Shown here: piece by piece, positions 226-40,272 of the stretch
Numbering within the stretch: position 1 is the stretch's first letter
Layout of the letters: each line of letters begins with the position of its first letter
NCBI RefSeq assembly: GCF_000737315.1
Contig: NZ_JMCB01000006.1
Location: 806,001 to 870,000 of the forward strand
Reading direction: 5' to 3'
Source of the DNA: Hyalangium minutum
Lineage (GTDB): Bacteria; Myxococcota; Myxococcia; Myxococcales; Myxococcaceae
DNA length: 64,000 bases
The notes under the pieces: model-generated
What the model was told of the DNA's origin: nothing
Databases searched by the model: none
The model's input: only the letters and a program-made list of their open reading frames with translations
Made by a program: the position numbers and the translations under genes

Positions 226-1590
226 ATGAAGCAGAGGCAGGTGCAGTGCAGGGCCGGTGCCTTGCTCCTCGCGTTTCTCGTGGGATGCAGCAGTGTTCCG
301 CGAGTCCCCCACGTGGAGCAGGCCGCCCCGGGTAAGGCCGTCGTCCACATTCCGCGCGCGGCGGAGCTGCAGCTCGTCGTGGTGGACAAAGAGGAGTTCC
401 AGAAGGCCATTCGCAGGCTGGCGCGCGAGGCGCGGCTGTCCGGCTCCCCGCGACAGACGGTGGAGCGGATGTTCCGGATGGACGCGCAGTTCGGTAACTA
501 CCTCTACCTCTTGAGGGACAAGAAGCTGGTGCCGGCGGGGCCAGGCGAGCTGCTGGAAGGGACGCTGACGAAAGAGGACTTGGAGACGGCCGAGCGCTAC
601 CGGCTGTGGTGCCGGGACGTCCACGGCTTCTACGGCGACTGTCTCGGGGGAGCGCTGGTGGCAGGGCGCTACCTGGACATGCACGGCCGCTACATCTGGG
701 CGTTGGCGCTGAGCAAGAGCCCGGTGTTGGAGGAAATGAAAAAGGCGTTGGGGGAGATGGTGCAAGTGCGCGCCCTCATCAACACAGTCCTATGGACGCT
801 GGGTTCCATGCTGCTGATCCTCGCGCTCAACCCCGTGGCTCCTGCGCTGGTGGCGGTGGTGGGCCTGGGGCTGGTTCTGTACGTGGGCGTGGACACGCTG
901 CAGAACCTCGTGTCCGGCTGGCTCGAGTTGATGGAGGAGGTGAAGGTGGCCAACACCTTCGAGCAGCTCCGCGAGGCGGGCGAACGCTTTGGGAAGATTC
1001 TCGGGCGCGAGGCGGCCCGCGCGTTCGCCATGCTGTTGATGGCGGCCATTGGCTCGACGGCGCAGCAGTTCGCGGCGAAGGTGCCGACACTGCCCGGTTC
1101 GGCGCAGGTGGCCGTGCAGGCCGAGGGTGTGGCAGGAATCCCGCTGCCCGCGTTGGGTGCAGTGGAGGAGTTGGCGCTGGCGGCCGAGGGCGTGAGCGTG
1201 ACGGTGGCCGCCACGGCGATGACCATGGGGGCCAGCGGCAGTGGCGGCACGAGCCCCTGCATCGAGACGCACCACATCGCTACCATTTGCAACGACACCT
1301 CCACCGCGCGTGGCGGGCCATGGACGCCGCGGTTCCGAGTCATCTTCGCCAAGGCGGGAATGTCGATGGATGACCCGGCGAACAAGATGCCGCTGCCGGG
1401 GCACTATGGGCCTCACCCCGAGCGGTACCACCAGATCGTCTATGATGAATTGTTCACGGCAACGAGTACTTGTCGCAGCATCTTGGACTGCCGTGAGAGG
1501 TTGACGCGCGCCCTTCGGGTTCTGGCGAAGGATATCTCCACACCAGGAACGGAGCTGAACCAGCTCCTGACCCGCCCATCGCCTCGTTAG
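226..1590 (+). CDS. Lipoprotein polymorphic toxin, SitA5-like N-terminus with C-terminal AHH (HNH/EndoVII-fold) nuclease
   Basis: RBS AGGAG; lipobox LVGC (Cys21); hydrophobic central helices; C-terminal THHIAT...NKMPLPGHYGPHPERYH; followed by an immunity-type gene. Confidence 0.8.
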   Translation: MKQRQVQCRAGALLLAFLVGCSSVPRVPHVEQAAPGKAVVHIPRAAELQLVVVDKEEFQKAIRRLAREARLSGSPRQTVERMFRMDAQFGNYLYLLRDKKLVPAGPGELLEGTLTKEDLETAERYRLWCRDVHGFYGDCLGGALVAGRYLDMHGRYIWALALSKSPVLEEMKKALGEMVQVRALINTVLWTLGSMLLILALNPVAPALVAVVGLGLVLYVGVDTLQNLVSGWLELMEEVKVANTFEQLREAGERFGKILGREAARAFAMLLMAAIGSTAQQFAAKVPTLPGSAQVAVQAEGVAGIPLPALGAVEELALAAEGVSVTVAATAMTMGASGSGGTSPCIETHHIATICNDTSTARGGPWTPRFRVIFAKAGMSMDDPANKMPLPGHYGPHPERYHQIVYDELFTATSTCRSILDCRERLTRALRVLAKDISTPGTELNQLLTRPSPR

Positions 1591-31616: not shown

Positions 31617-31982
31617 TCAGCGGCAGTGCAGGTTCACGGTGGAGAAGAGCTCGCTGATCTCGAACGGCTTCTTGAGGATGCCCTGGGTGCCCGGCAGCGG
31701 CGCCCGCCCGCTGGCCGTGACGATGATGATGGGGATGTCGCTCTGCGCCGGGTCCTGGCGCACGTGCCGCAGGAAGTCCTCGCCGTTCATCACCGGCATC
31801 ATCAAGTCCAACAGGACCAGACACGGCGGCCCTATCTGGCTCAGTACCTCGAGCCCCTCTTGTCCGTTGGAGGCGACGGCGACCTCGAAGCCCTCTCCCT
31901 CGAGGAGCTCCGCCATGGCCGCACGAATGTCCTCGTCATCCTCGACGATCAGGACGCTGCCTCTCTGTCGAGTCGTGCTCAC
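31617..31982 (-). CDS. Single-domain response regulator
   Basis: VLIVEDD, LVLLDLMMP, IIVTA, KKPF. Confidence 0.9.
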   Translation of the reverse strand: MSTTRQRGSVLIVEDDEDIRAAMAELLEGEGFEVAVASNGQEGLEVLSQIGPPCLVLLDLMMPVMNGEDFLRHVRQDPAQSDIPIIIVTASGRAPLPGTQGILKKPFEISELFSTVNLHCR

Positions 31983-32123: not shown

Positions 32124-33779
32124 ATGAGCGAGGGAAGCTTTGCCGATGCCTCCACCATCGGCATCAAGAAGCGGAACAGCAGCGAGCCGGTGGCCCGGCT
32201 GGTTCCGGCGCTGACCCTCGTCTCCCACCCCATGGCCCACCGGGTGGGCGAGCGGCTGCTGATGGAGGGCGTGCTGTCGGGCCGGCCCGTGGAGCTGTCC
32301 CGGAATGCGCCGGACTTCCAGCGCCCGGACGCGGTGCTCGGCACGCCCCTGGCGGATCCGTTCCTGAGCCGCAAGCCGGTGGTGTTCTCGCAGGGCTCCG
32401 GGGGCGGCGTCCGGCTGGCGCCTGGGGATGGCATCAAGGTGGCGCTGGCGGGCGAGCCGCTGCGCGAGCCGTGGGAGTTCTCGCCCGAGGAGCTGTCGGT
32501 AGGCGTGGTGCTCGAGCTGGCCGAGCGCGTGGTGGTGCTGCTGCACTGGGCGGACCCTTCCACGCGCACGGCGGTGGATGCGCTGGGCATGGTGGGCACC
32601 AGCGCGGGCATCGAGCAGGTGCGCCACCACATTGAACAGGTGGCGGACCTGAACGTGCCGGTGCTCGTGCGCGGGGAGACGGGCTCGGGCAAGGAGCTGA
32701 TCGCCCGAGGCATCCACCAGCGCAGCCAGCGCCGCGACCAGGCCTTCGTGAGCGTGAACATGGGCGCCATTCCCAAGGAGCTGGCGCCCGCGGAGCTGTT
32801 CGGCGCGACGAAGGGCGCCTTCACGGGCTCGGTGAAGGACCGCGAGGGCTTCTTCGGGGCCGCGCATGACGGCTCGCTCTTCCTGGACGAGGTGGGCGAG
32901 GCGCCGCCCGAGGTGCAGGTCATGCTGCTCCGGGTGCTGGAGACGGGCGAAATCTTCCCAGTGGGCGAGCGCACGCCGGTGAAGGTGGACGTGCGGCTCA
33001 TCGCGGCGACGGACGCGCAGCTGGAGCAGCAAATCCAGGACGGGCGCTTCAAGGCGCCGCTGCTGCACCGCCTTGCGGGCTACGAGATTCGCGTGCCTCC
33101 ACTGCGGGAGCGGCGCGAGGACATTGGCCTGCTCTTCCACCACTTCGCGCGCGAGGAGCTGGAGGCCATTGGCGAGGCGTGGCGGCTGAAGCCGGAGGAC
33201 GCCTCCACCGAGCCCTGGCTGCCCGCGCCGCTGGCCTCGCGGCTGGTGCGCTTCGGGTGGCCCGGCAACATCCGCCAGCTTCGCAACATCACGCGCCAGC
33301 TCATCATCGGCAGCCGGGGGCACCCCCGGCTGCGGCTGGACCCCCGGCTGGAGAAGGAGCTGGATTCGTCCCTGCAGCCCCGGCCTGGGCGCCCTGTCGC
33401 GCCCGCGGCGCCAGACGTGCGAGTGGAGGCGAAGCCTCCCACCGCCGCCGCGAAGCCGCCGGCCGAGCCCAAGTCCTCCGCCGCCCGCCGCAAGGCCTCG
33501 GACATCTCCGAGACGGAGCTGCTCGCCGCGCTCCGGGGGTGCGCGTGGGATTTGAAGGCCGCCGCGGACCGGCTCGGCGTTCCCCGCTCCTCCATCTATG
33601 ACTTGATCGACAAGAGCCCCCACATCCGCACCGCCGGAGACTTGTCCGTGGAGGAAATCACCCGCTGCTTTCAGGAGTGCACGGGGGACCTGGACGCCAT
33701 GGCGCAGCGCCTCGAGGTCTCCAAGCGGGCCCTGGGCCGCCGCATCAAAGAGCTGGGGCTCGGCTCGGGCGAGAGCTGA
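32124..33779 (+). CDS. Sigma54-dependent enhancer-binding protein with FHA-like N-terminus and two tandem Fis-type HTHs
   Basis: GETGSGKE, ELFG..KGAFTGS, LFLDEVGE, RLIAAT, WPGNIRQL; N-terminal DAST and LADPFLSR; two HTH segments at C-terminus. Confidence 0.92.
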   Translation: MSEGSFADASTIGIKKRNSSEPVARLVPALTLVSHPMAHRVGERLLMEGVLSGRPVELSRNAPDFQRPDAVLGTPLADPFLSRKPVVFSQGSGGGVRLAPGDGIKVALAGEPLREPWEFSPEELSVGVVLELAERVVVLLHWADPSTRTAVDALGMVGTSAGIEQVRHHIEQVADLNVPVLVRGETGSGKELIARGIHQRSQRRDQAFVSVNMGAIPKELAPAELFGATKGAFTGSVKDREGFFGAAHDGSLFLDEVGEAPPEVQVMLLRVLETGEIFPVGERTPVKVDVRLIAATDAQLEQQIQDGRFKAPLLHRLAGYEIRVPPLRERREDIGLLFHHFAREELEAIGEAWRLKPEDASTEPWLPAPLASRLVRFGWPGNIRQLRNITRQLIIGSRGHPRLRLDPRLEKELDSSLQPRPGRPVAPAAPDVRVEAKPPTAAAKPPAEPKSSAARRKASDISETELLAALRGCAWDLKAAADRLGVPRSSIYDLIDKSPHIRTAGDLSVEEITRCFQECTGDLDAMAQRLEVSKRALGRRIKELGLGSGES

Positions 33780-33796
33780 TCCACCGGGTCGCCGCT

Positions 33797-33843
33797 GTGT
33801 CGGACGCCCGTCCGACGTGTCGGGCAGGCCGTCCGACGTGTCG
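33797..33843. promoter_or_regulatory. Candidate enhancer (UAS): inverted plus direct repeats
   Basis: Perfect 15-bp direct repeat CCGTCCGACGTGTCG at 33808 and 33829 (21-bp period); GTCGGACG-CC-CGTCCGAC inverted repeat 33799-33816. Confidence 0.7.
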
Positions 33844-33925
33844 AACGGCGCGAGAAGGGCCCTGTTTTATACCAGACAACCCTGACAGAGCGGCAAAAAA
33901 GGCCGTACTTCCGGGTATTTGGGCG

Positions 33926-33941
33926 TGGCACCGCGATTGCT
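33926..33941 (+). promoter_or_regulatory. Sigma54 -24/-12 promoter
   Basis: TGGCAC-CGCGA-TTGCT matches TGGCAC-N5-TTGCW. Confidence 0.85.
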
Positions 33942-33983
33942 GTAGCCTGCCGCACACAATCTCTAACGGCAGGGGGAAGCACC

Positions 33984-34100
33984 ATGGCGGACAAGAACGA
34001 CAACACGACGCAGACGGGTGACACGAGCGGCTCGGGCACCACCACCTCGAGTGCGGGTGGCACGAGCAAGGGCGGCGAGGTTCCTGTCGTTCCGGGCTAG
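33984..34100 (+). CDS. 38-aa Ser/Thr/Gly-rich peptide (not in ORF track)
   Basis: GGGGAAG SD then MADKNDNTTQTGDTSGSGTTTSSAGGTSKGGEVPVVPG*; lies between sigma54 promoter and a hairpin. Confidence 0.7.
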   Translation: MADKNDNTTQTGDTSGSGTTTSSAGGTSKGGEVPVVPG

Positions 34101-34169
34101 GGCTTCCAGCGCCGGTTCACGCGGGAGGACTCGCGCGGCCGGCGCCTGCTGAAGGTTGCAGTCAGGCAG

Positions 34170-37100
34170 TCATTGGTTGGAAGCGTGCTCTGCACGCAGC
34201 CTCAGCGCCTCTGGGTGCTTGGGGCAGGACTTGAGCACTTCTTCCACCAAGGCGAGGCCGCGTTCCAGCTGGGGGGCTGGGACGCGGCCCGCTTTCTTTT
34301 CCGCCAAGGCCCACGCGAGGTGCAGTGAGGCGGACGCCAGGCGCGTGTCGTGCTGCGAGGGATCCAACTGCAGGGCCTGCTCGAAGTCCTTGGCCGCCTC
34401 CGCGAAGTCTTCCACTCGGGACTGAGCCTTTCGCGCCTTCCACTGCAACTGCAGCGCGTGGGTTTCTCCCAGGTAGCCCCAGGCCTCGGAGGCCCGGGGG
34501 TTGTGGCGCAGCGCCTCGCGCAGCTCCCTCTCGGAGCGCTGCAGGGTGGCGCTCGGGTCGCGGCCCCGCGCCAGCTCGTACTCCGCCAGCGTCCGCAGCG
34601 CCCTGCCCAGGTTCGTCCGGGGGAGGAAGTCACCCGGGGATTGCTGGAGCGCCTTCTCGAAGGAGGCCACCGCCTCGCGCACGTTGGGGGCAGGGTCCTC
34701 GCCGCGGGCGCCTCGGTACAGGGCGCGCAGGGCGTGCACCTGGCCCAGGTTGTTGTAGCTGTGGGCCTGCTTGCGGGCCAGCTCCAGGGCTCGCTCGAAG
34801 GCGGCCTGGGCCTCGTCGAGCAGCGGCAGCGGATCCCCTCCGTGCTTCAAGCGCTGCTCGGCCTGGTTGAGCAGCACCGTGCCCACGCCGGACTGCAGGT
34901 GCTGGCTGCGCCCGTTGACGGTGAGCCCCCGCTGATAGATTTCCAGCGCTTGCGCCAACAGGGTCTGCGAATCATCCAAGCACTGGTGCCGGTCCGCCAG
35001 CTGCTCCAGGGCGTCTCCGGCGTTGAAGTACGTGACCCAGTTCTTGGGGTTGAGCTCGATGGCCCGGCGGCTCGCCTCCCAGGATTGCTTGAGGTCCTCT
35101 TCGGGGCGTGAGGGCGTGCCCTGCGTGCCTTCGGGGCTGTCTGCGGGCTGCAAGGCCCGGTTGAGGTAGGCCCGGCCCAGGTTGGTCCACGCATCCGCCA
35201 GCCGCGGATCCAGCCGCGTGGCTTGCTGGAGCGCCTCGATGGCCTGGTTGCGGTGCGCGTCCGCGCGGATGCCGACGTCGTCCTCGCAGGCGCTCCAGAG
35301 CGAGAAGATGGAGCCCAGGATGGTGTGGAATTCGTAGTCACGGTCCGCCGGGGGGATGGCCTGTAGGGCCTGCTCGGCCTGGCGCAGCGACTCGAAGGGG
35401 TCCTGGCCGCGGTTGCGGCGGAAGCGCGCGAGCTGCTGGAAGGTGCGAGCCAGCTCCAGCTGCACCTCCCGGGCGGGGTGCCCCCGCTGGAGCGCCATGC
35501 GCGCCGCTTCCATGGCCGCGGTGAGGTTGGCCTCGGCGTCCTCGAAGCTGTTGTTCTGGCTCTCGGCGAGCCGGCGGTGGAAGCGCGCCTTCAGCATCAA
35601 CGGCATGGGCTCCTCCGGCGCGGCCTGGAGCGCGCGTGTGACGGCCGCCATGCCTCGGGTGAAGGCGGGGAGCACGTCGCCCTCGCTGTAGACTTCGACG
35701 ATCATCGCGTTGGCCTCGAGCTTGGCCAGGGCCTGGTGGACAGCGGGCACGCTCTCGCCAATGGCGGCGGCGGCGGCGTAGGCGCGGCGGCCCGCCTCGA
35801 AGTCGGCGCGAGCGCCCTCGAGGTCTCCCTGCTTCAGGTTCCAGCGCCGCATGGCCCGGGCCTGGAGGATGTCGCCGCGCAGCTGGGGCGCCTCGTAGAA
35901 CCAGGGCAGGCGGTTGCCCATGGCGTCCAGCCGCGCCAGGGCGGCGTCGAAGTCGTCCTCATAGAAAGCAATGAGGGCGGCCACGTATTCGGAAGAGGGC
36001 ACATCCGCGCCCTGGCTGCGGCGCAGCCAGTCCAGCGCTGGGTCCCGGTAGCGGGCCTGGATGTCGCGCCGGCGCTCTTCGATGCTGCGCAGGCGCTCGG
36101 CCTCCAGCAGCTCGTCCTGGTAGCGGCGGCCGAGCACGATCGCGAGCGCGTAGGCCACGCGCGGATCCTTGAAGCCGCTCTGCCACGCAAGCTCCAGGTG
36201 CGTGCGCGCGGCGTCCTCGTCTCCGAGCGCCAGAGCGCCGCGCGCCAGGGCGTAGTGGCCCGGGCCCACTGCCAGCGCTCCGGCCTCGCGGATCTGCCCC
36301 TCCAGCTCGGCCATGCGGTCGCGGATCTTCTGGCGGTCCTCGCGCGTGTCGTGGAGCGGAGACAGGCCCGAGTAGCGGGCCAGGGCTTCAATGTGTTCGA
36401 CTTTCTCGGTGAAGCTGCGGGCGAGCTGCTCGCGGCGGGTGGCCTGCGAGTGGGTGTAGAGGGCCGAGCCCAGCGCGAGCGTGACGGCCAGCAGGGCGGC
36501 GGCGGCCACGCTCACCACGAGCCGGTGCTTGAGCGCCTTCTTGCGCAGCCGGTACCAGAGGCCGGTGGAGCGGGCCTGCACGGGCTCGCCGGCGAGGAAG
36601 CGGTCCAGGTCCTCAATGAGCGCGCGCGCCGAGTCGTAGCGGGCGGAGCGGTCCTTCTCCAGACACTTGAGGACGATGGCCTCGAGGTCCGTGGGGACGT
36701 TGGGGTTCAGGGTGCGCGGAGGGGTGGGCTCCACGGTGGCGATGTTGTTGAGCACCTCGAGCCCATTGGCGCCGGGGATGGCCTGGTGGCCGGTGAGCAG
36801 GAAGTAGAGCGTGGCGCCGAGGCTGTAGACGTCCGCGCGTCGATCCAAGCCCTCCACCTGGCCGCGGGCCTGCTCGGGGGCCATGTAGTGCGGCGTTCCC
36901 ACCGCGGAGCCCGAGCTGATGCTCTCCTTCTCGCTCCAGTCATGTGCGAGACCGAAGTCCATGACGAAGGGCTTGAGGCGCCCATCGTCCGTGCGCTCCA
37001 CGAGGATGTTGGAGGGCTTCAAGTCCCGGTGGATGAGGCCGGCGCGGTGGGCGGCGTGGACGCCCTCGGAGGCCTCGCGCAGCACGAGCACCTGCTGCTC

Positions 37101-37733
37101 CACGGTGAGCTTGAGCTCGCTGGCGAGCCGGTCCAGGGGGAGCCCGTCCACGAACTGCATGGCGATGTAGGGCTTGCCTTGAACCTCGCCCACCTCGTGG
37201 ACCTGGCAGACGCGCTCGTGCTCCACGCGGGCCTGGGCGCGGGCCTCGGACATGAGGCGGCGCACGAGCACCTCGTCATCGCCGCGCACGAACTTGAGGG
37301 CGACGTTGCGGCGCAGGCTCCGGTCATACGCGAGGAAGACGCGGCCCATGCCGCCCTGGCCGAGGAAGCGCACGCCCTCGTAGCGCTCCCAGCCGGGGAC
37401 GGGGAACTGCGGGTCGGCCTTGTCGCGATCCGCCAGCGTGAGGGCGGGGCCCAGCGTCTCGGCGCCGCCGGTGCCCGCCGCGCGGGGGACAAAGGTCTCG
37501 TCTACGTCTGCCTTGCGCAGCTCGGCGAGGGACTCATCCGAGAGGAGGCCGCGCGCCTGGAGGAGGGCGAGGGGGCCCTTGCCGGAGCGGAGGGACTCCT
37601 CGCGCAGCGGCTCCACCTCCTCGCGCGTGATGAGGCCCTCGGCCAGGGCCATGCGCAGCTCGGCCTCAAGGTCATCGTGCATCAGGGCGGGCTCCGAGGG
37701 TGGGCTCGGGGAGGGGGGCGCGAGAGGGGACAC
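34170..37733 (-). CDS. Membrane Ser/Thr kinase with large TPR-repeat C-terminal region
   Basis: LGQGGMGRV, VALK, IHRDLKPSN, MDFG, GTPHYMAPE, DVYSLG; TM HRLVVSVAAAALLAVTLALGS; many TPR-like helices; start may be 37682. Confidence 0.92.
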   Translation of the reverse strand: MSPLAPPSPSPPSEPALMHDDLEAELRMALAEGLITREEVEPLREESLRSGKGPLALLQARGLLSDESLAELRKADVDETFVPRAAGTGGAETLGPALTLADRDKADPQFPVPGWERYEGVRFLGQGGMGRVFLAYDRSLRRNVALKFVRGDDEVLVRRLMSEARAQARVEHERVCQVHEVGEVQGKPYIAMQFVDGLPLDRLASELKLTVEQQVLVLREASEGVHAAHRAGLIHRDLKPSNILVERTDDGRLKPFVMDFGLAHDWSEKESISSGSAVGTPHYMAPEQARGQVEGLDRRADVYSLGATLYFLLTGHQAIPGANGLEVLNNIATVEPTPPRTLNPNVPTDLEAIVLKCLEKDRSARYDSARALIEDLDRFLAGEPVQARSTGLWYRLRKKALKHRLVVSVAAAALLAVTLALGSALYTHSQATRREQLARSFTEKVEHIEALARYSGLSPLHDTREDRQKIRDRMAELEGQIREAGALAVGPGHYALARGALALGDEDAARTHLELAWQSGFKDPRVAYALAIVLGRRYQDELLEAERLRSIEERRRDIQARYRDPALDWLRRSQGADVPSSEYVAALIAFYEDDFDAALARLDAMGNRLPWFYEAPQLRGDILQARAMRRWNLKQGDLEGARADFEAGRRAYAAAAAIGESVPAVHQALAKLEANAMIVEVYSEGDVLPAFTRGMAAVTRALQAAPEEPMPLMLKARFHRRLAESQNNSFEDAEANLTAAMEAARMALQRGHPAREVQLELARTFQQLARFRRNRGQDPFESLRQAEQALQAIPPADRDYEFHTILGSIFSLWSACEDDVGIRADAHRNQAIEALQQATRLDPRLADAWTNLGRAYLNRALQPADSPEGTQGTPSRPEEDLKQSWEASRRAIELNPKNWVTYFNAGDALEQLADRHQCLDDSQTLLAQALEIYQRGLTVNGRSQHLQSGVGTVLLNQAEQRLKHGGDPLPLLDEAQAAFERALELARKQAHSYNNLGQVHALRALYRGARGEDPAPNVREAVASFEKALQQSPGDFLPRTNLGRALRTLAEYELARGRDPSATLQRSERELREALRHNPRASEAWGYLGETHALQLQWKARKAQSRVEDFAEAAKDFEQALQLDPSQHDTRLASASLHLAWALAEKKAGRVPAPQLERGLALVEEVLKSCPKHPEALRLRAEHASNQ

Positions 37734-37801: not shown

Positions 37802-38884
37802 TCATACCCTCGAGGCCTGGATGCGCACGGGGATGCGCCGGCGTCCGAACGCGCCCGGAGCCGTGTCGAAGCGGCCGGGCACCCGAGCCCCGCAGTCCGG
37901 GCACTTGCCATCGGCCGTCACCCGGTACTCGAGAAGCTGGTACCAGTCGCGGACGATGAGCGAGGCCCCGCAGCCGCCGCACGAGGTGGTGTCCCCTTCG
38001 ATGTCATGCACGTTGCCGGTGTAGACGTGGTGCAGCCCTGCCCGCTTGGCAATCTGCCGGGCGCGCGTCAGGGTCGCGGGCGGAGTGGGGGGCACATCCA
38101 TCATCTTGAAGTCCGGGTGGAAGGCCGAGAAGTGCACTGGCACGTCCGGACCCAGCTTGGAGACGACCCACTCGGACAGCTGCGACAGCTCCGCGTCCGA
38201 GTCGTTCTGACCCGGGATGAGCAGCGTCGTGATTTCGAACCACACGCGCGTCTCGTGCTTCAAGTACTCCAGCGTCTCCAGGATGGGCTGCAGCTTGGAG
38301 AAGGTAACGCGGTGGTAGAAGTCCTCCGTGAAGGCCTTCAGGTCCACGTTGGCCGCGTCCATCTTCGCGTAGAAGTCACGCCGGGGCTCGGCGTGCATGT
38401 AGCCCGCAGTCACTGCCACGGTCTGGATACCCCGCGCGTGGCAGGCGTCCGCCACGTCCATGGCGTACTCGGCGAAGATGACCGGGTCGTTGTAGGTGAA
38501 CGCCACGCTCTTGCAGCCCAGGCGCTGGGCCTCTTGGGCGATGGCCTCGGGCGAGGCCTGATCCATGAGCCGGTCCTGCTCGCGGGACTTGGAGATGTCC
38601 CAGTTTTGGCAGAAGCGGCATCCCAGGTTGCACCCCGCCGTGCCGAACGAGAGCACGCTGCTGCCTGGGTAGAAGTGGTTGAGCGGCTTCTTCTCGATGG
38701 GGTCCACGCAGAACCCGGACGAGCGCCCATACGTGGTGAGCACCATCTGGTCCCCCGCCCGCTGGCGCACGAAGCAGAAGCCCCGCTGGCCCTCGTTCAG
38801 CTTGCAGTCGCGAGGACACAGGTCGCACTGGATGCGCCCGTCCTCGAGCCGGTGCCACCACCGTCCTGGATATTCGAGGCTCAT
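37802..38884 (-). CDS. amrS: AmmeMemoRadiSam system radical SAM enzyme
   Basis: CDLCPRDC, VDPIEKKPLNHF, GCNLGCRFCQNWDISK, AFTYNDP, NVDLK, YTGNV. Confidence 0.9.
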   Translation of the reverse strand: MSLEYPGRWWHRLEDGRIQCDLCPRDCKLNEGQRGFCFVRQRAGDQMVLTTYGRSSGFCVDPIEKKPLNHFYPGSSVLSFGTAGCNLGCRFCQNWDISKSREQDRLMDQASPEAIAQEAQRLGCKSVAFTYNDPVIFAEYAMDVADACHARGIQTVAVTAGYMHAEPRRDFYAKMDAANVDLKAFTEDFYHRVTFSKLQPILETLEYLKHETRVWFEITTLLIPGQNDSDAELSQLSEWVVSKLGPDVPVHFSAFHPDFKMMDVPPTPPATLTRARQIAKRAGLHHVYTGNVHDIEGDTTSCGGCGASLIVRDWYQLLEYRVTADGKCPDCGARVPGRFDTAPGAFGRRRIPVRIQASRV

Positions 38885-39009
38885 GATCGGCTCGTTCCCC
38901 CCCAAACCCAATCCATATCGGAGCCTGGACCCTGGCGCACGGGCTTGGCGGGTCCCCTGCGCACGGGCCGTGCCTCCGGCTGGACCCCCGGGGAGCGTAG
39001 ACTGCGCGC

Positions 39010-40272
39010 ATGTCCAAGACCGACACGCGCTCCGCCGACCCGTGCCCGCACCTGGGCCGCGAGTACAACCACTTCGCCGGTCCCCACCTCCAGAACCCAG
39101 CACCGTTCTTCGAGCGGCTCCGGAAGGAGGCGCCCGTCACCTTCAACCCCATGCTGGGCATGTGGCTGATCAGCCGCTACGACGACATCGCCGCGGTGCT
39201 GAACAACGCCTCCGCCTACTCCTCGGCGAGCGCGGTCGCCTCCACGGAGAAGCTGACACCCGAGGCCCAGGCCATCCTCGGGCCCGGCCCCATCATCCAC
39301 GACAGCCCACTCAACATGGATCCGCCGGCCCACACCCGGCTCAAGCGCCTGCTGCAGCGCGGGTTCACGCCCGCGAAGATCGCCCGCCTGGAGCCGCGCA
39401 TCCGGCAGTTCGCCAACGCGCTCATCGACAGCTTCATCCACGAGGGCCGGGTCAACCTCGTGGAGCGCTTCGCCTCGCCGCTGCCGGTGCAGGTCATCCT
39501 GAGCATGGTGGGCGTGCCGCAGGAGGACATGGAGCGAGTGAAGAACTGGTCCACCGCGCTGTTCGGGCTCGTGTTCGCCCAGATTCCTCCCGAGCTGCAG
39601 CCCACCCTGGCGCGCGGCGTGGTCGAGTACCGGCACTACTGCACCCAGCTCATCGAACAGCGGCGGCGCCAGCCCCAGGAGGACCTCACGAGCGACCTCA
39701 TCGCCGCCGAGCCCGATGGTGAGGCGCTGACGATGGACGAGCTCATCTCGCTCATCGGCGGCTCGCTGCTCGCGGCAGGCCATGAGACGACGACGGCGCA
39801 GATTGCGTTGTCCGTGAAGAACCTGCTGGAGCAGCCGGAGCGCTGGCAGAGGCTGCGCGAGGACCGCTCGCTCATCCCCAAGGCCGTGGAGGAGTGCATG
39901 AGGCTGGAGGGCGTGGCACCCGGCATGACGCGCACGGCCCTCCAGGACGTGGTGGTGGGCGGGGTGTCCTTGCCCAAGGGCTCGCGCCTGCTGCTGCTCT
40001 ACGGCTCCGCCAACCACGACGAGGCGCACTACCCGGATCCGGAGCGCTTCGACCTGGAGCGCGAGGGCCCGCAGCACCTCACCTTCGGCCGCGGCATCCA
40101 CTTCTGTCTGGGCGCGCAGCTGGCCCGGCTGGAGCTTCGCGTCGCGCTCGAGCAGCTCCTGGAGCGCATCCCCGAGCTGCGCCTCGTCCCGGGCCAGGAC
40201 TCCGGGTACCAGCAGGACCTGCTGATCCTCCGAGCCATCCGCCAGCTCCAGGTGGAGTGGCCCGTCCGCTGA
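39010..40272 (+). CDS. Cytochrome P450
   Basis: MDPPAHTRLK, AGHETT, EECMR, FGRGIHFCLGAQLARLE. Confidence 0.96.
   Translation: MSKTDTRSADPCPHLGREYNHFAGPHLQNPAPFFERLRKEAPVTFNPMLGMWLISRYDDIAAVLNNASAYSSASAVASTEKLTPEAQAILGPGPIIHDSPLNMDPPAHTRLKRLLQRGFTPAKIARLEPRIRQFANALIDSFIHEGRVNLVERFASPLPVQVILSMVGVPQEDMERVKNWSTALFGLVFAQIPPELQPTLARGVVEYRHYCTQLIEQRRRQPQEDLTSDLIAAEPDGEALTMDELISLIGGSLLAAGHETTTAQIALSVKNLLEQPERWQRLREDRSLIPKAVEECMRLEGVAPGMTRTALQDVVVGGVSLPKGSRLLLLYGSANHDEAHYPDPERFDLEREGPQHLTFGRGIHFCLGAQLARLELRVALEQLLERIPELRLVPGQDSGYQQDLLILRAIRQLQVEWPVR

Follow-up and report, generated by a model that had tools for sequence, protein, structure and literature searches.

What is the function of a 38-residue peptide that is encoded between a sigma-54 activator and a membrane Ser/Thr kinase? 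The question is raised by a locus of the myxobacterium Hyalangium minutum, placed in a 64-kb stretch of DNA (the window). In this locus, the gene of an enhancer-binding protein (EBP) with a forkhead-associated (FHA)-like N-terminal domain is followed by an enhancer, a -24/-12 promoter and the peptide gene, which faces the convergent gene of a Hanks-type kinase with a long tetratricopeptide repeat (TPR) region. Myxobacteria possess about 100 Ser/Thr kinases and about 50 sigma-54 activators. To our knowledge, very few of these proteins have a known input, partner or target. The cassette is a compact and genetically linked path that comprises a sensor kinase, an FHA-type activator, an enhancer with its promoter and one tiny product.

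A first-pass annotation, made from the sequence alone, had described this arrangement and proposed that the peptide is a signal, a kinase substrate or decoy, or a TPR ligand closing a feedback loop. The EBP with its GAFTGS loop, the peptide open reading frame (ORF) and the convergent membrane kinase with TPR repeats are all placed where it had put them, and its interpretation is partly supported, in that the architectural part holds. The reading tentatively preferred here, at rather less than an even chance, is that the locus is a signalling cassette conserved in the Hyalangium/Stigmatella clade, in which the peptide is the dedicated effector or ligand output and the TPR ectodomain of the kinase is its candidate receptor. 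The parts of the cassette are members of known families (bacterial EBP, FHA fold, -24/-12 promoter and Hanks kinase). The new elements are a peptide motif family without prior description and a terminator embedded in the kinase ORF.

Conservation of the three-gene arrangement

The loci compared were drawn from genomes, protein look-ups and metagenomes, the latter being retrieved with the EBP N-domain as query. The anatomy of the locus, its conservation, the coding signature of the peptide, the motif family and the terminator were established directly on this material. The full arrangement, i.e., the EBP, the enhancer boxes, a TGGCAY-N5-TTGC promoter, a Shine-Dalgarno (SD) site, the small ORF and the convergent kinase-TPR gene, is found in 10 loci: the window, L002, L004, L051 (Hyalangium gracile), L052 (Stigmatella sp.), L063, L065, L068, L074 and L075. 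The carriers are Hyalangium, Stigmatella and metagenome-assembled genomes (MAGs). The peptide profile alone led to two of the loci (L074 and L075), which thus constitute an independent test of the triad. The first-pass annotation had named the recurrence of the triad and the variation of the peptide in other myxobacteria as points to look at; the triad does recur, and the peptide is conserved yet polymorphic.

The association of the EBP with the kinase extends beyond this clade. A convergent kinase orthologue is found in 10 of the 11 EBP loci with sufficient downstream DNA, paralogues in other genomic contexts included. Paralogous cassettes of Archangium minus (L053), Myxococcus fulvus (L054) and Corallococcus (L005) hold the EBP and the convergent kinase paired in unrelated surroundings. 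Since these cassettes keep the pair with other middle genes (Table 1), what is conserved at the core is the EBP-kinase pair, and the peptide gene is the element that one clade has in the middle. The single counter-example is L062 (9626-10300; same metagenome as L068), in which an 81% identical EBP stands without enhancer, promoter, peptide or kinase. Of two further loci, L001 stops at the peptide ATG, and L064, a contig of 3.3 kb that may be a chimera, has a peptide with an aberrant C-terminus. In L054, a sigma-54-like sequence (TGGTCCGAGCGTTGCA) is placed ~50 nt ahead of the lipoprotein ATG.

The peptide gene

There are 13 distinct orthologous peptides, with 35-44 residues. In the codon alignment of eight peptide genes, the ATG, the SD site and the stop codon are conserved and all indels are multiples of three. 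The same alignment indicates that the body of the peptide turns over rapidly yet stays rich in Thr, Ser, Gly, Asn and Asp, and that the C-terminal tail is held. The ORF has the appearance of a genuine coding gene that is translated. The constrained part comprises the 8-15 C-terminal residues, of the form [G/K]-x-[G/P]-[D/E]-hydrophobic-[P/I]-hydrophobic-hydrophobic-x-[G/N]-COOH, and when the whole window is translated in all six frames, this motif turns up a single time.

As the first-pass annotation had noted, the peptide is about one third Ser/Thr and lacks a signal peptide. Its description as unannotated is correct only to the extent that the gene is not universally annotated: the protein collection includes the peptide, and NCBI lists its Stigmatella orthologues as hypothetical proteins. 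One of the carriers is Stigmatella aurantiaca (P0122).

Searches of Pfam and NCBIfam with the peptide and its orthologues returned no family, and a full-text literature search for the motif strings returned no papers. The alignment query with the peptide retrieved six proteins only, and the key relatives were supplied by an exhaustive profile search. One match of the profile search, the eukaryote-like repeat protein P0128, was rejected as a low-complexity artefact. A metagenome scan with a 54-residue in-frame extension of the peptide matched 600 stretches, none of which passed tblastn.

Other identities of the ORF were considered and rejected. A leader peptide or attenuator of the thr-operon type is incompatible with the loci, as the next gene is convergent in every one of them and none is co-oriented downstream. 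An RTX-like reading of the tail suffers from an unsuitable spacing; the same applies to a sortase-like reading, and no transmembrane segment comes afterwards. The untranslated region upstream of the peptide (5'UTR) differs among loci. It has ~110 nt with a G-rich hairpin (…CTCACGGGGGGTGAG…) in L002 (7830-7949), L004 (7630-7742), L051 (8800-8909), L064, L065 and L074, and ~35 nt with no such hairpin in the window, L001/L063 and L052. The G-rich hairpin may serve to control translation, or it may be a repeat that was inserted.

The C-terminal tail in secreted proteins

The exhaustive profile search and its follow-up retrieved ~25 small proteins with Sec-type signal peptides, encoded on contigs of 46-62% G+C content (GC) that include Chloroflexi MAGs. 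These proteins are tandem strings of short units, among them GTSKGGDVPVTPG, GGGTGDVIIISG, GKDPEVPVSPN, KKGSFDIT, RKVNEYEGQHR and GDPSQWG (units A-F in Table 1). P0129, a metagenomic protein, carries the last 15 residues of the window peptide, AGGTSKGGEVPVVPG, three times and unchanged. P0137 holds AGGTSKGGEVPVVPG together with AGGGGGTGEVIIISG, the 15 residues with which the H. gracile peptide ends. The DNA that codes for AGGTSKGGEVPVVPG in the window and in one copy of L056, a contig of 62% GC, differs in 6 of 45 nt, and all six differences are synonymous. The tail of every myxobacterial orthologue is of type A, B or C.

Judged from these matches, the tail is a self-contained unit which, given the signal peptides, is predicted to be exported in other phyla, and the three tail types look interchangeable. 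Pfam and NCBIfam gave no family for the secreted repeat proteins. The Chloroflexi loci have housekeeping neighbours only. The neighbours of P0155 are resolvase, Dam and helicase genes, a setting that suggests a mobile element.

The enhancer and the sigma-54 promoter

The candidate enhancer contains a perfect 15-nt direct repeat, CCGTCCGACGTGTCG, at 33808-33822 and 33829-33843 (21-bp spacing), and a degenerate third copy at 33792-33803. Each copy of the 15-nt repeat holds an inverted-repeat box, CGAC-N2-GTCG, and in the window the exact enhancer 11-mer is confined to this place. The boxes, two to three in number, are placed 83-134 bp upstream of the -24/-12 promoter. The predicted promoter has the GG and GC elements at the expected spacing and candidate activator sites upstream. 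The spacer between enhancer and promoter includes an A-tract that may be a DNA-bending site.

TGGCAY-N5-TTGCW is matched exactly at one place of the window, the promoter core TGGCACCGCGATTGCT. When one mismatch is tolerated, 2 matches are obtained against an expectation of 2.96, which does not exceed chance. The weight of the promoter call therefore comes from its conservation and not from the number of matches: TGG and TTGCT show no variation across the alignment of 10 loci, in which the boxes and the A-tract block are conserved as well. The enhancer and consensus promoter proposed in the first-pass annotation are thus sustained.

These data bear on one alternative, a chance intergenic ORF accompanied by incidental promoter-like and repeat sequences. 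A single consensus match within the chance count and a short ORF of low complexity are what such an origin would give; nevertheless, it is contradicted by the 13 orthologues, the promoter and enhancer in 10 loci, the in-frame indels and the motif family, and its probability is practically negligible.

The EBP and its N-terminal domain

The EBP shows the features of a bacterial enhancer-binding protein: an AAA+ domain with Walker A and B motifs and a loop of the GAFTGA type, a C-terminal helix-turn-helix (HTH) and candidate cognate sites upstream of a promoter. The family is large and paralogous in Myxococcaceae/Archangiaceae, with 1728 matches below 1e-100 and several members per genome.

The first-pass annotation had called the protein FHA-like, which stands at the level of the fold and not at that of the family model. 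Residues 1-160 match no Pfam family, the FHA model included, even at E<=10, and a sequence-profile search of the PDB with the N-domain gave no matches. On the other hand, the AlphaFold2 (AF2) model built with 18 homologues has a pLDDT of 84 (>90 over most of residues 30-140), and FHA domains account for each of the best 50 matches that Foldseek gives in the PDB (ArnA at 2.5e-4, KIF1A, GarA, CT664 and Rad53), with a target-normalised TM-score of up to 0.8. The modelled N-domain is FHA-like at the fold level. S59-R60-N61 and S82-R83-x-P85 are invariant in the 18 homologues and fit the Arg and Ser positions with which FHA domains bind phosphate.

The coupling of Ser/Thr kinases to FHA-type EBPs in myxobacteria was described in the first-pass annotation as established, which is an overstatement. 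For the FHA-EBPs of Myxococcus xanthus, Jelsbak, Givskov & Kaiser 2005 is cited in PMC12288465 and PMC4320627, MXAN_4899 is named as an EBP in PMC4880591, and the demonstrated Ser/Thr protein kinase cascade of myxobacteria is Pkn8-Pkn14-MrpC. The literature searched cites FHA-EBPs, and a direct demonstration of a kinase acting on one of them was not found in it. A hint comes from P0033, a single 777-residue ORF in which a Ser/Thr kinase catalytic domain (HRDIKPAN, APE) is fused to an FHA-EBP of the present family (69% identity). This fusion may be taken as a Rosetta-stone pointer to kinase-EBP coupling.

The kinase and its TPR ectodomain

The motifs expected of a Hanks kinase are present (Table 1), and the kinase looks active. 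One transmembrane helix precedes the TPR region and the catalytic domain requires ATP; for these reasons, the topology read from the translation implies that the TPR region must be extracytoplasmic. When modelled alone from a single sequence, the ectodomain (residues 437-1187) is all-helical, with ~33 helices and a moderate pLDDT of 64, and Foldseek relates this model to the long TPR superhelices of OGT, SPINDLY and designed CTPR proteins. The distal ectodomain is the fastest-evolving segment of the kinase, its identity falling from 69% to 40%, whereas that of the kinase domain falls from 95% to 71%. This divergence fits a ligand-binding surface that tracks a fast-evolving ligand. The co-variation between peptide type and ectodomain is indistinguishable from overall phylogenetic distance.

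A cytoplasmic alternative has to be considered at this point, in which the Thr/Ser-rich peptide is phosphorylated by the kinase and then occupies the FHA domain of the EBP or titrates the kinase, with no export step. A cytoplasmic location is predicted for the kinase domain as well as for the FHA-fold domain, and the peptide has no signal peptide; it is 34% Ser/Thr, a richness kept in 13 of the 13 orthologues despite fast turnover, and this T/S-rich body is confined to the myxobacterial peptides, being absent from the secreted repeat proteins. However, beyond composition no single Thr is positionally conserved. The constraint sits in the hydrophobic tail, type-C tails (GKDPEFPVTSN, GKNPELPVVTG) have no Thr upstream of the acidic residue, and Sec-exported proteins of other phyla carry the same tails. 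A phosphorylated substrate or decoy is considered unlikely, without being far-fetched.

Three observations on the kinase gene stand apart from these arguments. The cytoplasmic N-terminal extension of the kinase (residues 18-115; 37400-37680) contains two GLIT/LLSxEx helical repeats that recall motifs of the MshEN/T2SSE_N type, with a spacing that differs from the canonical c-di-GMP-binding motif. The called kinase ORF of H. gracile (L051, 9031-9044) and of Stigmatella (L052, 8952-8965) runs ~58 residues beyond the homologous end and overlaps the last 14 nt of the peptide gene on the opposite strand, probably because the reading frame happens to stay open in GC-rich DNA. A class III/IV lanthipeptide synthetase was considered and rejected, as the LanL/LanKC NCBIfam matches span the kinase domain only (85.6 bits, the cut-off being 650) and the peptide has no Cys.

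The end of the transcript

A hairpin after the peptide gene, on which the first-pass annotation had ended the transcript, is present between the two convergent genes, whose stop codons are 69 bp apart; it has no U-run, and the 81-nt interval that contains it folds at -37.9 kcal/mol with z = -1.56, which is unexceptional. A better terminator is placed ~150 nt beyond it, within the last ~45 codons of the kinase gene. A terminator-like element is found 200-270 nt past the peptide stop in L002, L004, L051, L063, L065, L068, L074 and L075 as well, i.e., it is embedded in 9 of the 10 peptide-type loci, and is missing in Stigmatella (L052) and in the lipoprotein-type paralogues. In the stem, pairing extends to 93% of the cells, a share that drops to 40-46% in controls with a slid partner, and one compensatory CG<->UA pair matches a Val/Ala change with a synonymous Glu change (kinase strand). 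The T-run (34293-34300) is encoded by rare AAA/GAA codons of the kinase strand. AAA represents 2 of the 32 Lys codons of the window kinase, one of them inside the T-run, and both AAA codons of the L068 gene are placed there. A stretch that codes for the kinase on one strand and resembles a terminator on the other clearly exemplifies dual coding, here as a link between two convergent genes.

From these features, the sigma-54 transcript probably extends from ~33950 to ~34300, is monocistronic and has ~350 nt, its 3'UTR running antisense to the last part of the kinase message. The peptide had been called the sole output of the promoter, which agrees with the coding content of the locus; the transcript itself probably has the antisense tail in addition, and other targets of the EBP in the genome, beyond the 64 kb, are possible.

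The locus could also act mainly at the RNA level, with a cis-antisense transcript controlling the convergent kinase mRNA and the ORF being secondary. The plus-strand hairpin and T-run inside the kinase ORF, kept in the peptide-type loci and not in the lipoprotein-type paralogues, the use of rare codons for the T-run and the invariant convergent geometry are what such a regulator would need. This explanation leaves aside the in-frame indels, the conservation of SD, ATG and stop, the synonymous-only differences in the tail and the occurrence of the tail in unrelated proteins. In addition, the Stigmatella locus L052 has the peptide without this terminator, which may merely shield the kinase gene from read-through. 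A scan of 33700-34300 against Rfam 15 at permissive E gave no family, the best match being narK with 19.5 bits versus a gathering score of 43.2. An RNA regulator of this type is judged improbable.

Gene layout and neighbouring genes

The positions of the features are given in Table 1. The GC of the window is 68.8%. The receiver-only response regulator lies inside a long spurious ORF, is divergent from the EBP and adjoins it in every peptide-type locus examined. A PAS histidine kinase follows the response regulator in H. gracile, Stigmatella, L002 and L003, and is not found in the window, L063, L065, L068 or L004.

Table 1. Features of the window and of related loci, with the units of the secreted repeat proteins.
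Feature	Position	Strand	Details
Receiver-only response regulator	31620-31982	-	tblastn 83% identity to the H. gracile PF00072 gene; EDD pocket, LLDLMMP Asp, VTAS and KKPF in translation
Sigma-54 EBP, 551 aa	32124-33779	+	Pfam Sigma54_activat (PF00158) 5.7e-59, AAA lid, HTH_8 3.4e-08
EBP FHA-fold N-domain (predicted)	residues 23-150; 32190-32573	+	AF2 model and Foldseek
EBP AAA+ domain	residues 156-399	+	Walker A GETGSGKE 184-191, GAFTGS 231-236, Walker B LFLDEVGE 252-259
EBP C-terminal HTH segments	residues 475-495 and 522-546	+	from translation
Candidate enhancer (upstream activator sequence), three CGAC-N2-GTCG boxes	33792-33843	+	boxes kept in 10 aligned loci
Spacer block with A-tract, enhancer to promoter	33868-33925	+	conserved in promoter alignment
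-24/-12 sigma-54 promoter TGGCACcgcgaTTGCT, predicted transcription start near 33950	33926-33941	+	exact TGGCAC-N5-TTGCT
SD site GGGGGAAG	33972-33979	+	4 nt ahead of ATG; G-rich SD at same distance in orthologues
38-aa peptide gene MADKNDNTTQTGDTSGSGTTTSSAGGTSKGGEVPVVPG	33984-34100	+	34% Ser/Thr; upstream extension of ORF impossible
C-terminal motif AGGTSKGGEVPVVPG (15 residues)	coded 34053-34097	+	end of the 38-aa peptide
GC-rich hairpin between convergent stop codons	34109-34145	+	69-bp gap; no U-run
Intrinsic-terminator-like element	34252-34300	+	18-bp stem, then TTTCTTTT; within last ~45 kinase codons
Hanks-type Ser/Thr kinase	34170-37733	-	Pkinase (PF00069) 3.8e-40 and TPR matches; probable start M18 at 37682
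Kinase domain	residues 118-370	-	VALK, HRDLKPSN, DFG and APE present
Kinase transmembrane helix	residues 405-426	-	sole hydrophobic helix; RLRKKALKHR just before
TPR superhelix ectodomain, all-helical, ~750 residues (predicted)	residues 437-1187; 34173-36425	-	model and Foldseek
Radical S-adenosylmethionine (SAM) enzyme, AmmeMemoRadiSam type	37802-39103	-	TIGR04337, 650 bits; directly upstream of kinase, on its strand
Cytochrome P450	39010-40272	+	after radical SAM, opposite strand to it
Middle gene, paralogous cassettes	L053 8638-9138; L054 8651-9220		166-189-aa lipoprotein (lipobox) directly after EBP
Middle gene, L005 (Corallococcus)	from 7773		different ORF, no peptide
Unit A			(A/S)GGTSKGG[D/E]VPV[V/T][P/T]G
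Unit B			GGGG[N/S/T]TG[D/E]V[I/V][I/V]I[S/P][G/N]
Unit C			GKDPE[V/M]PV[S/D]P[N/K]
Unit D			[K/R]KGSFD[I/L]T
Unit E			RKVNEYEGQHR
Unit F			GDPSQWG
Secreted-family members	loci L055-L061, L072, L073		P0126, P0129, P0131, P0133-P0155

The first-pass annotation had found no adjacent enzymes for a ribosomally synthesized and post-translationally modified peptide (RiPP). A radical SAM gene and a P450 gene do adjoin the kinase, but they are not conserved with the triad. The radical SAM gene is syntenic in Hyalangium-like loci, being beside the kinase in the window, L002, L051, L063, L065 and L068, with P450 genes following, and is absent from L004 and L052, both of which keep the peptide. These genes give some substance to a RiPP-type precursor, in which enzymes encoded nearby or elsewhere would modify the tail as the core peptide, which would then be released as a natural product. 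The tandem units of the secreted family do look like multi-core precursors, and in our own reading each motif type sets Thr, Ser or Lys near Asp or Glu, as in ATP-grasp-modified peptides. On the other hand, the radical SAM belongs to the AmmeMemoRadiSam type, and the peptide is not accompanied by any conserved maturase, protease or exporter. In the Chloroflexi loci, the neighbours are housekeeping genes. The peptide lacks Cys, and the kinase lacks the lyase and cyclase domains of lanthionine synthetases. A RiPP-type origin is distinctly improbable.

Proposed mechanism

In the preferred reading, i.e., a conserved cassette whose peptide is a dedicated effector or ligand, the membrane Hanks kinase would sense its input through the extracytoplasmic TPR superhelix of ~750 residues. 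The cytoplasmic kinase domain would then signal to the neighbouring EBP through the FHA-fold N-domain, by phosphothreonine docking. Subsequently, the EBP bound to its two to three CGAC-N2-GTCG boxes would activate the sigma-54 RNA polymerase at the -24/-12 promoter, and the ~350-nt monocistronic RNA would yield a disordered and acidic peptide of 35-44 residues, rich in Thr, Ser, Gly and Asn. We infer every signalling step of this chain, as well as the export and the receptor.

The tail may be a self-contained protein-binding ligand, because the same types are tandem repeats in Sec-secreted proteins of other phyla. A role outside the cytoplasm is favoured for the peptide, since its tail is an exported and repeated unit elsewhere. 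The TPR ectodomain of the kinase itself would be the prime candidate receptor, which would give an autoregulatory loop; the peptide would require some export route to become a TPR ligand. The antisense RNA tail over the kinase mRNA could provide a second feedback on the kinase, at the RNA level. If the tail is indeed a ligand, it would represent a new class of bacterial peptide signal with a new type of receptor.

Several points weigh against this reading. The main weakness is the absence of an export signal or exporter. The peptide and the TPR domain are placed on opposite sides of the membrane, a hydrophobic N-terminus of the signal-peptide kind is found in none of the 13 myxobacterial peptides, there is no double-glycine leader of the usual hydrophobic pattern in the peptide, and no conserved exporter in the cassette. 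The conserved Thr/Ser-rich body is left unexplained by a C-terminal ligand. The neighbourhoods of four secreted-repeat genes share no partner and contain no conserved kinase or EBP. Relaxed constraint is also compatible with the faster divergence of the ectodomain. In the EBP, the canonical phosphothreonine-binding set of FHA domains is only partly recognisable, as read from the motif, with Pro in place of His and no Asn-Gly. Finally, conservation inside one clade is partly plain synteny (moeA-mobA-RR-EBP).

A wider view may be formulated from the secreted multi-copy proteins, which share identical 15-residue units with two different Hyalangium species. The tails A (GTSKGG[D/E]VPVxPG), B (GGGxTG[D/E]VIIISG) and C (GKDPExPVxxN) would be a cross-phylum family of extracellular short-peptide signals, of which myxobacteria would have wired one copy into an autoinduction circuit of a new kind (TPR-kinase receptor, FHA-EBP, sigma-54, peptide) with an antisense brake. 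The multi-copy versions of Chloroflexi and other soil bacteria would then use the same language or be interfering mimics, for example between predator and prey. This extension is speculative, and we consider it rather unlikely.

Comparison with known systems

Small sigma-54 transcripts adjacent to an EBP gene are known in cbrB-crcZ, glrR-glmY and luxO-qrr1, as well as in M. xanthus, where the pxr sRNA is placed beside nla19. The present locus resembles them in the EBP gene, the several activator sites, the -24/-12 promoter and the short monocistronic local output. In contrast, their outputs are non-coding sRNAs under EBPs with receiver domains, whereas the output here is a conserved peptide ORF without Rfam match, under an EBP with an FHA-like input.

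The RRNPP systems of Firmicutes (Rap-Phr, NprR-NprX and PlcR-PapR) have in common with the cassette a small adjacent peptide gene, a conserved C-terminal tail, which is the active part in RRNPP, and a TPR protein as candidate receptor. The multi-tail secreted relatives of the peptide also recall the multi-copy Phr precursors. However, the RRNPP regulators are cytoplasmic TPR proteins, and their peptides leave the cell by the Sec route, are processed and then taken up again. In the present locus, a Hanks kinase carries the TPR region as its ectodomain, the output passes through sigma-54 and the peptide has no signal peptide, and the cassette does not qualify as an RRNPP system. The TPR superhelices of OGT and SPINDLY, which bind extended peptides within the superhelix, are the best structural matches of the ectodomain model. 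The likeness is a structural analogy only, drawn from a low-confidence model (pLDDT 64), and the kinase has no glycosyltransferase domain.

The path from a membrane Hanks kinase to an FHA regulator is shared with the mycobacterial pairs PknH-EmbR and PknB/PknG-GarA, and GarA is among the structural matches of the N-domain, together with other bacterial FHA domains. Unlike in the mycobacterial pairs, the kinase of the present locus is paired with a sigma-54 AAA+ activator and has a TPR solenoid of great length as its sensor. Similar proteins are the FHA-EBPs of M. xanthus, among which is MXAN_4899. They have the same order of an N-terminal FHA-type domain, an AAA+ sigma-54 domain and a C-terminal HTH, with a presumed Ser/Thr kinase input. 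The EBP described here differs from them in that its FHA domain is recognised only at the fold level, in being genetically locked to one TPR kinase and in having an adjacent peptide gene that can be named as its target. With this cassette, the old proposal that kinases feed FHA-type EBPs becomes directly testable, and Stigmatella aurantiaca, as a carrier of the peptide, is a candidate organism for such tests.

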